Source: Iphione sp. A-MEVVRFRX5
Taxonomy: Eukaryota
NCBI GenBank assembly: GCA_976226885.1
Contig: OZ320317.1
Span: 21,886,001-21,950,000, forward strand
Length of the DNA stretch: 64,000 nucleotides
Direction: 5' to 3'
Shown: positions 827-63,374 of the stretch, piece after piece
How positions within the stretch are numbered: position 1 is the first letter of the stretch
How the letters are laid out: the number at the start of each line of letters is the position of its first letter
Made by a program: the position numbers and the translations under genes
The notes under the pieces: model-generated
Told to the model about the DNA's origin: nothing
The model's database searches: none
What the model saw: the letters and a program-made list of their open reading frames with translations, nothing else

Positions 827-987
827 CACAATGTCCCCCTCCTGCGGCTGTTGGGAGAGTTTGGCTATGAGCTCGTTGTTGTGGTAGAGGCTGCCGTCAT
901 GCCGAAGCACCCAGCTGTCCATGTCCCGGCCTAAGGGCACGGTGTGCAGGTTACACTTCCGGGTCGACACACCTACGCCCCAGACAC
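827..987 (-). CDS. SPRYD7: SPRYD7 coding exon 3 (161 nt)
   Basis: TTGTAG acceptor, GTGAG donor; encodes VWGVGVST...PLGRDMDSW...QEGDIV. Confidence 0.95.
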
Positions 988-3900
988 CTACAAGGAGAGG
1001 GGAGACCAAAACACAACCAGATTTAAAAAAAGAGATAGAGAGAAAGAAGGTTTTAGCATTCTGGAACTTTCATCGGGAAGAATATCATATTGTATGGTTC
1101 ACTGTTATTTTATTGATATCTTTATTTAACCTGATGATTGTTTACAAAAAGTATGTTATATCAGGACAGTCCTACTGCAAATTTCAACGACATAATCAAC
1201 GCCCAAGGTTATGTCCAAGGTTACCATGTGGAGAGAGTCCATGGAAAGATTCGGTCTAAATAATGTGGTGTATTTGAAGGTATCTTTCAAAGATAATTTC
1301 TGGGAACTATGCATGCAGTTTACTTAAAACCTTACTTATGCCATATATATCACCAAAAAAAAAGAAACACACACAAAACTGTTTATCAAAATAATGTCGT
1401 GTTCTCAAAATACTGCAGTTAAGTTCTAAAGTGCGGACGTACAAACTCAATAAAAGTCATGCAAGACATTGACTGAAACAAAACTGATCAATGGCCGATT
1501 TCTCTCACCCGCTGACTGTAACTTTATCTCAAAGTAGGCTTTGTTCTGTACAATGGGAGCGTTGCCGAGAGCTGCACCCGTGCCACAAATCCTTCGACCA
1601 TTCTTCACAATAACTACGTCATTTCCTGCAACGATAACAAAATTGACAAGAGATGAAAAAAGAGGAAATTCTTTAAAACAAGTGGTTGATTTTAGAGAGA
1701 GATAGAGATAGACAGAGAGTGAGAAATAGATAGATAGATAGATAGATAGAGAGAGAGAGAGAGAGAGAGAGAGAGAGAGAGAGAGAGAGAGAGAGAGGGA
1801 GAGAGAGAGAGAGATGAAGAAAGTGGCCCTTAACCATGTCTTTCATAATGTTCACCTCATCTGGAAGATCAGTATCAGTCGACAGAACAGGTGATAGCTA
1901 GAACAGTTGTACATGTACTTTAAATAGTTCATATGCTACGTGCCAACATTTGTTCTGTGCTAAAGAAGAACTGAAAAGCGGAAAAGGAAAAGCCAAAGGT
2001 GAAAAAAAACAGATCGGAAGAGACCGACAGAAAGAGAACATCAGAAAGAACGACAACATGACAGGGAGATAAAATGGTGAGATGGCATGGACAGACAATG
2101 CAACAGAATGGCAGACAGAAGGACATTGAAGACGGGTGGCATCTAAGAGAACGAGCGGGTGGGGGACTGAAAGGGAAACAGAAGTAGTGCGACAAAATGG
2201 GACAAAGACACAAAAGAATGGAGAGAATCATGAGCGTGGAGCGAGATACGAACAGGAAATTCCAGGAAGCAACAGACAGACAGACAGACAGAATAGGACG
2301 AGAGGAACGCAGGAGAGAGAAACAGCTAGGACAATGCACAGACAGAAGAAGAGGAAACAAAGAAATAGTTAGGAAGTAAAGGAAAAGAGATCTATTACAC
2401 AGATTTTCACATTGCTCATGCTATTGAGCTTGGGACATACAGTCAACTCAGTATCCGAAATTTAATCATCTTCTGAACGAATTTTCTTGACAGAGACAGG
2501 CATTTAAGAGAGAAACAGCTAGGACAGTGCACAGACAGAAGAAGTGGAAACAAAGAAAGAGAGAGGAAGTAAGGAAAAGAGATATTTTTTTACAGATTTT
2601 CACATTGCTCATGCTGTTGAGCTTGAGGTATACAGTCCACTAGATATCCGAATTTACTCATTTTCCGAACGAATTTTCTTAACCGAAACAGGCATTTAAC
2701 TCCAGTCATCTCTCTTAAAGATTAGATCACAGAGGAGACCAGATTGGGTGAGGGACTGCTTTTTGATAGAACCAAAAATATTATTTCATTAGAAAAGGAG
2801 ACCACAGAGAAAACAGGGACCAGATTTGTCCAGCCCAACAGGTGGTCTTCTATGGAAGAGAGTCAGTTGTATAAGCTAATATGACTCATCTAAATTAACT
2901 CGTTTTATGAATGAGCATTTGGATACTGAGTCCTGGATAGAGACGATGCTTATGTTTTAGTTCATGAAGACTTCTCTGGTCTTTTGGGGAGAGGTCTAGG
3001 TGTGTTTTGTTTTTTTTCACGCAGAGGGAAGGTCTTTTGCTTGCGCAGACCAGTGTGTGAGTGAATGGAAAAAGAAGTGATAACTAGCAAATTTGATGAG
3101 AATAGCATCAAAAACTGGCGAAGTACACTGGAAAAAGCAAAGAAACTGGAAAGTTTGATGGGAATAGTCGCAAAAACTGGTGAAATTCACTGGAAAAAGT
3201 ATGAAAACTGTCAAATATAATAGGAATATTGGCAAAACTGTCAAATTTCACTGGAAAAAAGTAGGAAAATCGGCAGGTATGTGCACACATGAGCAACATG
3301 TGCAAACACATGTATACAGAAACATGTGTTTTTGCTTCAGTTAACATAGATTTGCTCATTTCCAAGCAACAAGCACACCTGGGAGCATCCGGGTGTGTCT
3401 GAAATGATTAAACATGTTATTAAACATGTTTGAAACGAACATATGCATGGAAACACACCTAAACACATACGTGCAGTCATTATAGAACACAGACCTGAAT
3501 GAAATTAACCTGTCCTATAATTAATACGGGGGCGAACGTATCTGCAAGGTCTCATGCAAATAGAAACTGGGCCTAATATGGACATGTCTCAATTAGAAAC
3601 AGTTTTGCAAGGAACTAAATGTGTCCCTATTGGAGACGACCCACCGTGACTTCATGAATGTGGAGTTTGGCATTAATTTCTAAGGTTTCTGAAAGAGTAT
3701 CCACAGTAAACTAAAGAAACTACCTCTACAACGTATGATTATGAACAAGCAGGGTCAAATTCACATTGAATAGATCCAGGATAAATAAACAATTTTTTTA
3801 ATCCGTGAATTTCAGTATTTGCCTCAATACATTAATGGCATATAATACAATGATTTATCATATTATACCGAGTATCGAAATCCATGCAACTGTGTAGATG

Positions 3901-61300: not shown

Positions 61301-62142
61301 CCTTAAGCCTTACTGACAGCTGCATGTAAGATGTAGTAGACCTCCAAAGTGCACTGTAGCAGTCTTTATACATGTACACCGTGTTACCTAAACTTCGGAT
61401 AGGCAGCACTCAATGGCCAAATCCAAACGCTAAAAGGAAACGCTCGAGGGGAAAAGCTCAATAATGTATGTAACAATCTAGATGATGCTATTTCAGCTTT
61501 CCGAAACTGACAGTGAAACTGTGATGGTTAAGCTGTTTGTTTGGCCAACTCTAATACTGTCTTAGCAGAATGACAAAAAAGGGAAAGGTTCACGTGGATT
61601 AAGCTGCCAGTGCTGTACAGCAGTAACCAGTGCAATGTTATGAAAATGTATATCTATAAACATGTCCTTAGAATCTAGTTCTTCTCTTAACCAATAGAAC
61701 ACTCTTTCTGAACTTTCGGAGGAACGTAAACGGCATAGCTTTAGTAGAAAACAGACGATTATATTGCTTTCGATCGCAAATTCTCATAACCTCACACTCT
61801 TGTAGAATAAGTGTTTTTTTTCCTGCCTTGTCTCGGTTTGGACAAGCAAAGTTTATAGCTGCTGGCATGCGCTGTAAAAAGAAAAAGTCTTTCTTTTCAA
61901 GATCAGATGTACGCGTCGTCATCTTTCTTTCTGTCGGATCTCGGATCTGTCTTCGCCGCACATGGTAGCTAGCCAATTATTCAATCCGTGGTGTTTAAAC
62001 ATTGCCCTGCCATGTACGCTATGCTGAAGCCTCTCACCATTGCTGCAAGCTCTGCTGGGGGTCGCTCTATAGACTGGGGAATGGTCGGTTTGAGAAAAAA
62101 AACCCACACACACACAAAACGAAATATGCATCTGTAGCGATG

Positions 62143-63374
62143 TCAAACCATGGATTCGCTTTGCTGCAGGGGGGACGTGTTGGTTGTGGCATCATATTTG
62201 GCTCGTATGGATCCCCCGTTCGTCTGGTTCAAAGAGGAGAACCGTTGCAGTTTTCGTGTATAGAACTTGCACTGCAATATTCTTATGAATGTCCTCTTGA
62301 AGGTCTTATTGAAGATGGTATATATGATGGGGTTGAGCGTGCTGGAGACGTAGCCCAACCAGAGGAACACCTTAAACAGAGCCACGTCAATGTCACAGGT
62401 GGAACACACCCCCATCGCGAAGTTCAGGCTGAAGAAGGGACCCCAGCTGAGGACGAAGATGGCGAACATGGTGCCGAGCACCTTGACCGCCTTGCGTTCG
62501 GTCTTCACCGTGTTCATCGTCTTTTTGTTCTGCGTCTCGCGACCCTTGGCTATGAGTACACTGGCCACTTTGATTGCCGCGCTGTGCTTCATCACCAGTG
62601 CTTGCAGGCGCGGTCCTTTGCTACCGCCGCCGCCGCCCTCGCGGCTGCACTGTCTGCTGAGTCGGGCCGTGCTGCTCAGGTTCGGGGAGGAGGCGGCCGT
62701 GCTCGGGGAGTCGGTGTCGGCGCCGCGGCCGGCCTCCCGGTGCAAGGGCTCCGTCTCGCTCGGGTGGGCCCCGCTCCGGTCGAGCCGGCTCTGGATCCGG
62801 CGCGCCAGCCCGATGCCGTTCGCCGGCGGCTTGTCCTGACGATGATGCTTCGACGACGGCGGCGACGACGACATCGACGACATCGACGATGGCCGCTGGC
62901 GGGACCCGCGCAGCATGGGGATGTGCGAGCGGCGGCGTCGACTCGTCGAGCGACGCATGACGGGTCCCCCGGCCTTGGACTTCTCGGCGCAGAGCCTGGC
63001 CTGCGTGTTGAGCAGGTGGATGGTGAGGGAGTAGGCGATGAGCATAATGAGCAAGGGCAGGAAGAAGGCGGCGAGCGATCCGTAGATGAGGAAGTAAGGG
63101 TTGAAGATGGCGCAGGTATCGTCGTAGAGCACGTTGGCTTCGTCCAGCAGGCTTAACATGATGATGGGACTCGCCAAGGCGAGTGAGATGAGCCACACGG
63201 TGGCAATCTTGACCCCGACGACGGTGCGTGACTTGTTCCTGTTCTTCAGCGGATGCCGTATGGCTATGTAGCGGTCCAGGGAGATGGTGCACATGTGCAT
63301 GATCGACGACGTGCACATCATCACGTCGAGCACTTGCCAAATGTCACACATCACCAGGCCAAAGGGCCAGTATC
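62143..63374 (-). CDS. HTR2: 5-HT2-type serotonin receptor (class A aminergic GPCR), last coding exon (ECL1/TM3 to C-terminus); upstream exons lie right of the window
   Basis: Acceptor TTTTTCGCAG at 63375 followed by GYWPFGLVMCDIWQVLDVMMCTSSIMHMCTISLDRY (D3.32, DRY), TM5 GSLAAFFLPL, TERKAVKVLG, TM6 SWGPFFSLN, TM7 WLGYVSSTLNPIIYTIFNKTF; stop at 62145-62143. SIMH(M/L)C and WLGYxSS are 5-HT2 signatures; subtype cannot be assigned. Confidence 0.9.

Follow-up and report, generated by a model that had tools for sequence, protein, structure and literature searches.

The window analysed here, a stretch of 64,000 nucleotides from the annelid Iphione sp. A-MEVVRFRX5 (NCBI GenBank assembly GCA_976226885.1, contig OZ320317.1, hereafter C11; C11:21886001-21950000), carries SPRYD7, an importin alpha gene of the alpha-3 (KPNA3/4) type and the emopamil-binding protein-like gene EBPL as immediate neighbours, followed by the last coding exon of a 5-HT2-type receptor. 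The same trio stands in the same order in mammals, and the best explanation, to which we assign a probability of roughly 0.7, is that the SPRYD7-KPNA3/4-EBPL order was inherited from the bilaterian ancestor. Under this explanation, the three genes would have been immediate neighbours already in that ancestor, with the 5-HT2 receptor, MED4, COG3 and GTF2F2 placed further along the same stretch of ancestral chromosome. The order would then have been kept by the slowly rearranging worm genome and by vertebrates, and broken in many other lineages. We infer ancestry rather than convergence, together with a retention that was mostly passive.

Inheritance is preferred because chance is a very unlikely source of the trio order in an annelid and in mammals, with the importin/EBPL pair recurring in a gastropod, and because independent losses are common. 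By our own arithmetic, the chance that three genes are consecutive in a given order is about 2/(N(N-1)), or about 6e-7 at an assumed number of about 1,800 genes on the chromosome. With the trio present in the worm and in mammals, and the pair in the gastropod, the arrangement has the make-up of a conserved microsyntenic block, that is, at least three orthologues lying near-adjacent in distant phyla. An earlier note on this DNA had described SPRYD7(-), KPNA3/4(-), EBPL(+) and a 5-HT2-type receptor(-), in this order, as a compact ancestral block retained in this animal. All four genes lie where that note placed them and on the strands it gave. The idea of retention gains from the order shared with mammals, from the gastropod pair and from a run of MED4, COG3 and GTF2F2 along the same chromosome; the block is not compact, however, and EBPL occurs without the importin beside it in six other animals.

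Genome searches ran over the complete 1.18-Gb assembly (89 contigs). Protein comparisons were made exon by exon, and the gene structures, splice junctions and transcription starts reported below are sequence-based.

Gene order shared with mammalian 13q14

The human 13q14 gene list includes, in succession, RCBTB1, ARL11, EBPL, KPNA3, SPRYD7, MIR3613, TRIM13 and KCNRG. On cat chromosome A1 the order is TRIM13, SPRYD7, KPNA3, EBPL and ARL11, with SUCLA2, HTR2A and ESD further along, and then COG3, SLC25A30, TPT1 and GTF2F2. Past ARL11, the mammalian run leads through MED4, NUDT15, SUCLA2 and HTR2A to COG3 and later to GTF2F2. HTR2A thus lies on the EBPL side, 16 genes beyond EBPL, whereas 20 kb separate EBPL from the receptor in the worm. 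The window is collinear with these mammalian lists, as had been claimed for SPRYD7, KPNA3, EBPL and HTR2A. The three orthologues that adjoin one another in the 13q14.2-q14.3 cluster EBPL-KPNA3-SPRYD7(-TRIM13-KCNRG-DLEU2) are also adjacent, and in the same order, in the worm, and on the EBPL side HTR2A, MED4, COG3 and GTF2F2 follow in nearly the same sequence as their worm counterparts. To the left of SPRYD7, no TRIM13- or KCNRG-like gene was detected by regular expressions for RING, B-box and T1 in the 100-kb flanks, which is a weak test.

Beyond the window, MED4 lies on C11 at 22.74 Mb (22735744-22735881), COG3 at 23.52 Mb (23523342-23525335) and GTF2F2 at 34.72 Mb (34717287-34738778); the identities of these three genes, and of the C1 set described below, are exon-level Pfam hits rather than full gene models. 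The worm order is accordingly SPRYD7, importin, EBPL, receptor, MED4, COG3 and GTF2F2. In mammals MED4 comes before HTR2A, so that one of the 21 gene pairs is discordant. When the trio is counted as one unit, such agreement is reached in 10 of 120 orders by our own count, and the near-mammalian order of MED4, COG3 and GTF2F2 on C11 is suggestive rather than strong.

The orthologues of CAB39L (Mo25), RB1, INTS6, TPT1 (TCTP), SUGT1 and succinyl-CoA ligase beta lie on C1, mostly at 49.5-57.6 Mb, and that of ALG11 on C10. Searches of the genome with PF09468 (RNASEH2B), PF11605 (VPS36) and PF10453 (NUFIP1) gave no match, a result that does not show absence. Mammalian 13q14 looks like two ancestral units interleaved, one corresponding to the worm C11 set and the other to the C1 set. 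A more far-reaching proposal, which we consider rather unlikely as a whole, is that C11:21.88-34.7 Mb and mammalian 13q14 represent bilaterian gene order on a megabase scale, from SPRYD7 to GTF2F2 with one adjacent swap. The unit found on worm C1 would in that case have been interleaved later in vertebrates, and the importin/EBPL pair would have been held together in spiralians by shared promoter-proximal regulation.

Identity and structure of the four genes

The orthologies proposed in the earlier note were borne out for the importin, EBPL, SPRYD7 and the receptor by exon-level matches, and for the receptor also by an orthogroup tree. The positions of these genes and of the other features of the region are given in Table 1.

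Table 1. Features of the window and its flanks. Positions are those of the window unless C11 or a flanking locus (L) is named; a slash within a splice site marks the exon border.
Feature	Position	Strand	Remarks
SPRYD7 exon 3 (VWGVGVSTRK...QEGDIV)	827-987	-	acceptor ttgtag/, donor /gtgagg
SPRYD7 exon 2 (NDVVIVKNGRRICGTG...QSAG)	1509-1625	-	acceptor gttgcag/GA, donor G/gtgaga
SPRYD7 exon 1 with start codon (MAAWICYPRCCC...DTSHMG)	9151-9265	-	donor G/gtaagt
SPRYD7 exons 4, 5	L003 8820-8719, 8277-8182 (C11:21884182-21884820)	-	left flank
Assembly gap (N)	4907-5157		within SPRYD7 intron 1; coding sequence unaffected
GC-rich (55-56%) transposon-like insert	13900-17300		between SPRYD7 and importin; open reading frames with HSLRH tyrosine-recombinase-like motif
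Importin alpha gene, alpha-3 (KPNA3/4) type	23841-35089	-	13 coding exons, 35089 to 23844, then stop codon
Importin exons K1, K2, K3, K12	35089-35024, 34192-34148, 31846-31682, 23936-23844	-	ag/gt borders throughout
Divergent importin-EBPL interval	35090-38760		3.7 kb between start codons
EBPL gene	38761-41575	+	4 coding exons: 38761-38937, 39582-39650, 40494-40676, 41352-41575
Tail-to-tail EBPL-receptor spacer	41576-62142		20 kb; repeats, apparent solo long terminal repeat, reverse-transcriptase fragments at about 50.7-53.5 kb
5-HT2-type receptor, last coding exon	62143-63374	-	third transmembrane helix to C-terminus; long third intracellular loop
5-HT2-type receptor, first coding exon (N-terminus, first and second transmembrane helices)	C11:22120115-22122431	-	171 kb to the right, outside the window

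SPRYD7 has five coding exons with canonical splice borders, three of them inside the window and two to its left, and is present in the genome in a single copy. Together, the exons are 52-74% identical to fish SPRYD7b, of which they span residues 17-196 (63% for exon 3, over residues 74-130), as is proper to a single-SPRY-domain protein of about 196 residues that is orthologous to vertebrate SPRYD7. Exon 3 alone gives a weak Pfam SPRY match, below the cut-off, and its label in the protein Atlas is the generic 'SPRY domain' only. Of the 74 proteins retrieved by a word search with the exon-4 frame, all that have a name are SPRY domain-containing protein 7.

The first intron of SPRYD7 is interrupted by the assembly gap. 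Exon 1 ends in ATG G/gtaagt (phase 1) and exon 2 starts with cag/GA AAT, which gives a split codon for Gly, and the protein joined across the gap reads ...DTSHMG-NDVVIVKNGRRICGTG... (...DTSHMG-NDVVIVKNG...). Fish SPRYD7b reads ...DTHHMG-TDVVIVKSGRRICGTG... (...DTHHMG-TDVVIVKSG...) at the same site. The alignment is continuous and no residue is missing relative to the fish protein; therefore, the gap conceals no coding exon. Because this gap, of unknown length, separates exon 1 from exons 2-5, it might be thought to join unrelated pieces, in which case SPRYD7 would not truly lie beside the importin and the adjacency would be an artefact of assembly. Such an artefact is hardly credible, since the gap splits a single-copy gene that keeps its exon order, strand and splice phase on both sides. 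This argues for a correct join across the gap, with the length of intron 1 uncertain. Moreover, exon 1 lies on the importin side of the gap and suffices to establish the adjacency.

The importin gene encodes an N-terminal IBB domain, matched in exon K3 at C11:21917691-21917849, followed by armadillo repeats, with Pfam Arm found in two exons. In comparisons with solved structures, exon K6 scores 122.6 bits against human importin alpha-3 and 69.7 against the next importin, and exon K10 scores 161 bits against human importin alpha-3 versus 141. On these exon scores, the predicted protein is closer to the alpha-3/alpha-4 subfamily than to the alpha-1 or alpha-5/6/7 subfamilies. The genome has three importin-alpha loci bearing an IBB domain, all on C11 (21917691, 37171859 and 86143985), a number that fits one gene per metazoan importin-alpha subfamily.

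EBPL carries the Pfam EXPERA/EBP domain (PF05241) in exons 3 and 4. In an exhaustive search with exon 3, the nearest full-length representatives are named emopamil-binding protein-like and share 62-72% identity with it (koala 72%, skate 70%, Lineus 70%, caecilian 69%, Mytilus 67%), and the score against human EBP is 39.9 bits only. The true EBP is a separate gene on C4, one exon of which reaches 124 bits to human EBP, and a third locus of the EBP family lies on C1. Because the named EBPL proteins are closest, the match to human EBP is weak and a distinct EBP is found on C4, the window gene is, judged by its predicted protein, EBPL and not the sterol isomerase EBP. Named EBPL orthologues are known from molluscs, starfish, acorn worms, amphioxus and a coral; EBPL is therefore older than the bilaterians. 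The clear EBPL of molluscs, echinoderms, hemichordates, amphioxus and a coral also rules out the view that EBP and EBPL are paralogues from a vertebrate duplication. The EBPL homologue P0313 is intronless and was uninformative. In the interval between the importin and EBPL, the observed/expected (o/e) ratio of CpG falls from about 1.0-1.2 at either end to 0.16-0.57 midway. Repeat-like open reading frames (ORFs) occur there at 36-37.3 kb, and repeat-like DNA takes up much of the 3.7 kb.

The last exon of the receptor has a Pfam 7tm_1 match of 142 bits, and LDVMM...SLDRY and NPIIY are readable in its ORF. The protein thus has a rhodopsin-type seven-transmembrane fold with the aminergic Asp in the third transmembrane helix (TM3), as well as the DRY and NPxxY motifs. 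Against solved structures, the top 29 matches of this exon are all human 5-HT2A/B/C (157-189 bits), followed by dopamine D2 at 136 bits; the top 29 matches of the first exon are likewise all 5-HT2A/B/C (61-69 bits), followed by D2 at 52. By these scores, 5-HT2A/B/C are the amine receptors nearest to the predicted receptor, and 5-HT2 receptors of spiralians and arthropods are the best named homologues of its last exon. A tree of that exon, drawn from annelid, mollusc, nemertean, arthropod, priapulid and rotifer sequences, places the window protein in a well-supported clade with Capitella and Lamellibrachia (Shimodaira-Hasegawa-like approximate likelihood ratio test, SH-aLRT, 98). Molluscs and the nemertean Lineus join this annelid clade, and the arthropod, priapulid and rotifer rows stand apart. 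On this placement we take the animal to be an annelid. The receptor thus belongs to the annelid clade of a spiralian 5-HT2 orthogroup, and the branching order of this orthogroup agrees with the species tree. Two further 5-HT2-like loci in the genome have the same split exon structure and fall outside the orthogroup in the tree.

The part of the receptor that encodes TM1-TM2 is absent from the window and from the next 100 kb. Its best match genome-wide lies at C11:22120128-22120316 (-), where a long open frame closes with ...SIVHELM G/gtaagt. The acceptor of the window exon, cgcag/GA TAC TGG, fits the phase of this upstream donor, and the joined product reads ...HELMGYWPFGLVMCDIWQ, as in homologues. 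No other TM3-7 exon was found between the first and last coding exons of the receptor. Given the matching splice phase and the lack of an intervening TM3-7 exon, the receptor intron therefore measures 171 kb and the gene 174 kb. With the first coding exon 171 kb to the right of the window and SPRYD7 extending 1.8 kb past the left edge, the four complete genes cover about 238 kb, and the 63 kb given for the block in the earlier note has to be abandoned. The first coding exon ends a 791-codon open frame (L036 5115-7431, -) that is GC-rich and has low-complexity Ala/Gly/Ser/Thr runs, and this frame may only in part code for the receptor N-terminus.

Linkage in other invertebrates

The invertebrates viewed around EBPL were Littorina saxatilis, Mytilus, Lineus, Magallana, Branchiostoma, Ptychodera and Asterias. 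The gastropod Littorina has the same head-to-head pair as the worm, with importin(-) lying about 0.7 kb upstream of EBPL(+); the importin exons are 64-90% identical to those of the window and are of the alpha-3 type (121 bits vs 72). The receptor orthologue, from the same orthogroup, shares a chromosome with EBPL in Lineus and Littorina, and in Mercenaria and Bulinus the two genes lie on contigs of identical length. The separation is 0.89 Mb on a 19.4-Mb contig in Lineus and 1.55 Mb on a 44.9-Mb contig in Littorina, with the Littorina receptor lying to the importin side. These distances are shorter than for a random pair with p values of 0.09 (Lineus) and 0.07 (Littorina), and Fisher's combined p is 0.037. 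The linkage of the receptor is loose in other genomes and tight only in this worm.

Several points weigh against an order inherited from the bilaterian ancestor. No importin was found within 10 kb of EBPL in Mytilus (which has no called gene in that range), Lineus (neighbours: 5'-nucleotidase, FMO and an Mo25 gene), Magallana (TDP-43), Branchiostoma (a fibrinogen-like gene and POLA1, L028 10001-22035), Ptychodera (a tandem EBP-family gene 6 kb upstream, L029 132-3699, and RasGAP) or Asterias (POLA1, L030 1-12553). With six lineages lacking the importin beside EBPL, an ancestral pair therefore needs many independent losses. Of the linkage that the earlier note had proposed to compare among bilaterians, the importin/EBPL pair was recovered in Littorina, but it is broken in amphioxus, the hemichordate, the echinoderm, Lineus and the two bivalves. 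Amphioxus and starfish have a different EBPL neighbour in common, POLA1, and EBPL-POLA1 may be a deuterostome microsynteny. In Pinctada, the receptor orthologue and EBPL lie on contigs that differ in length. The orientation also differs: SPRYD7 and the importin oppose EBPL in the worm, whereas the mammalian genes reportedly lie on one strand. The genes of 13q14.3 are described as transcribed from one strand, and human SPRYD7, KPNA3 and EBPL presumably share a strand. The difference from human that had been suspected earlier stands to this extent, SPRYD7(-) and importin(-) against EBPL(+) in the worm. Finally, the views of other genomes covered 10 kb on each side of EBPL, the sample compared for gene linkage consisted of bilaterians only, and the SPRYD7-importin adjacency is documented by this worm and the mammalian literature.

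As for the neighbouring genes themselves, worm POLA1 lies at C11:27523204, on the same chromosome as EBPL and 5.6 Mb off. The Mo25 (CAB39-type) gene of Lineus (L024 22410-23990) is 8 kb from EBPL; mammalian CAB39L is five genes from EBPL, and the worm Mo25 gene is on another chromosome.

Alternative explanations

The three genes could have shared an ancestral chromosome and nothing closer, and have come to lie side by side independently in the worm, in Littorina and in vertebrates. Among bilaterians, chromosome-level linkage without conserved order is the rule, the adjacency is absent in most of the sampled species, and the orientations in worm and mammal differ, all of which is in keeping with such convergence. 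Nevertheless, for the same trio to turn up in two phyla, and the pair in one more, would be a very improbable accident on the estimate given above for the trio, which depends on the assumed gene number, and four further genes are near-mammalian in order along C11. Taking both sides together, we regard coincidence as quite improbable.

Shared cis-regulation is a second way in which the genes might have been kept together, either through receptor enhancers lying in housekeeping neighbours, as the earlier note had proposed for this neural receptor, or through a bidirectional importin/EBPL promoter. The importin/EBPL pair is divergent in both the worm and Littorina, with gene ends about 0.7 kb apart in the latter, and in the worm CpG o/e is near 1 at both promoter-proximal ends, which would suit a common promoter. 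In the worm, however, the start codons stand 3.7 kb from each other, on either side of CpG-depleted, repeat-like DNA, the pair is reported to be tandem and not divergent in mammals, and the six sampled lineages have no importin beside EBPL. The receptor fares no better as the source of a constraint: its first coding exon is 171 kb off on the side far from EBPL, its promoter presumably lies no nearer and on that same side, and the distance to EBPL amounts to 0.9-1.55 Mb in two spiralians and 16 genes in mammals. Furthermore, 5-HT2 receptors are atypical as developmental target genes. Conserved non-coding elements, which the regulatory proposal placed at 41.6-62 kb, gave no match when the three non-coding spacers were compared by blastn with the foreign loci, a weak test in which spacers of close relatives were not included. 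Neither conserved non-coding elements spread over bystander genes nor a preserved synteny of the target, the hallmarks of a genomic regulatory block, were found. Because the 5' exon of the receptor faces away at 171 kb and the linkage is loose elsewhere, a regulatory block is not supported, and the repeat-rich spacer likewise speaks against it. We therefore hold regulation to be an improbable cause of the arrangement. Nothing shows an active constraint holding the genes together, and the divergent importin and EBPL genes may at most be coupled locally.

Mobile elements and intergenic DNA

The GC-rich insert at 13900-17300, possibly a DIRS- or Crypton-like element, stands outside the gene block proper; Pfam assigned its ORFs to no family. 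Similar tandem ORFs occur at L006 5243-9594, 40 kb to the left of the window. The EBPL-receptor spacer contains thousands of repeat candidates. Within it, a 435-bp element at 43113-43548 has at least 39 copies in the genome at 97-100% identity, often paired 7.7-9 kb apart, and looks like the long terminal repeat (LTR) of a very young LTR retrotransposon, left at this position as a solo LTR. Pfam searches of 20 long ORFs from the flanks and the gene-free stretches of the window, plus one ORF in a SPRYD7 intron, revealed no extra gene, and the only domains in them are of transposon type (reverse transcriptase, integrase, chromo) or NADAR; Rfam over the window returned no family. The receptor intron includes two ORFs that end in NADAR, L020 3814-8661 (-), of 1616 aa, and L022 5916-8024 (+), of 703 aa. 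These NADAR ORFs adjoin an integrase/chromodomain ORF and may be part of an unusual mobile element.

Comparison with known systems

The SPRYD7-importin-EBPL trio is most likely a new example of a known phenomenon, the leftover of an old bilaterian gene neighbourhood. It documents that three unrelated genes of housekeeping type have kept one order in an annelid and in mammals alike, and it offers a case of collinearity, beyond a shared chromosome, around the medically important human 13q14 (chronic lymphocytic leukaemia deletion, RB1, HTR2A). As a marker block, it could help to reconstruct how 13q14 and its paralogous region at 3q25 looked before the vertebrates. In the literature searched, we found no paper linking these genes with invertebrate synteny, and none of the gene names in the supplements of PMC8851819; the block may figure in other lists.

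The window shares with genomic regulatory blocks a tissue-specific neural gene adjoining housekeeping genes. It differs from them in that the 5' end of the worm receptor faces away, 171 kb off, and in that the linkage is not tight in other lineages. It thus serves as a cautionary case, since a neural receptor beside housekeeping genes resembles a regulatory block, but other genomes do not bear this out. Ancient bilaterian microsyntenic blocks are known (e.g., Simakov et al. 2013, PMC4085046; Robert et al. 2022, PMC8851819), and the trio resembles them in that a few functionally unrelated orthologues have stayed neighbours across phyla, whereas its own distribution among the sampled animals is patchy. 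As in bilaterian ancestral linkage groups, seven 13q14 orthologues are together on one worm chromosome, C11, and a second set is on C1. What sets the C11 genes apart from such groups is that, beyond their membership of one chromosome, their order has largely been kept.

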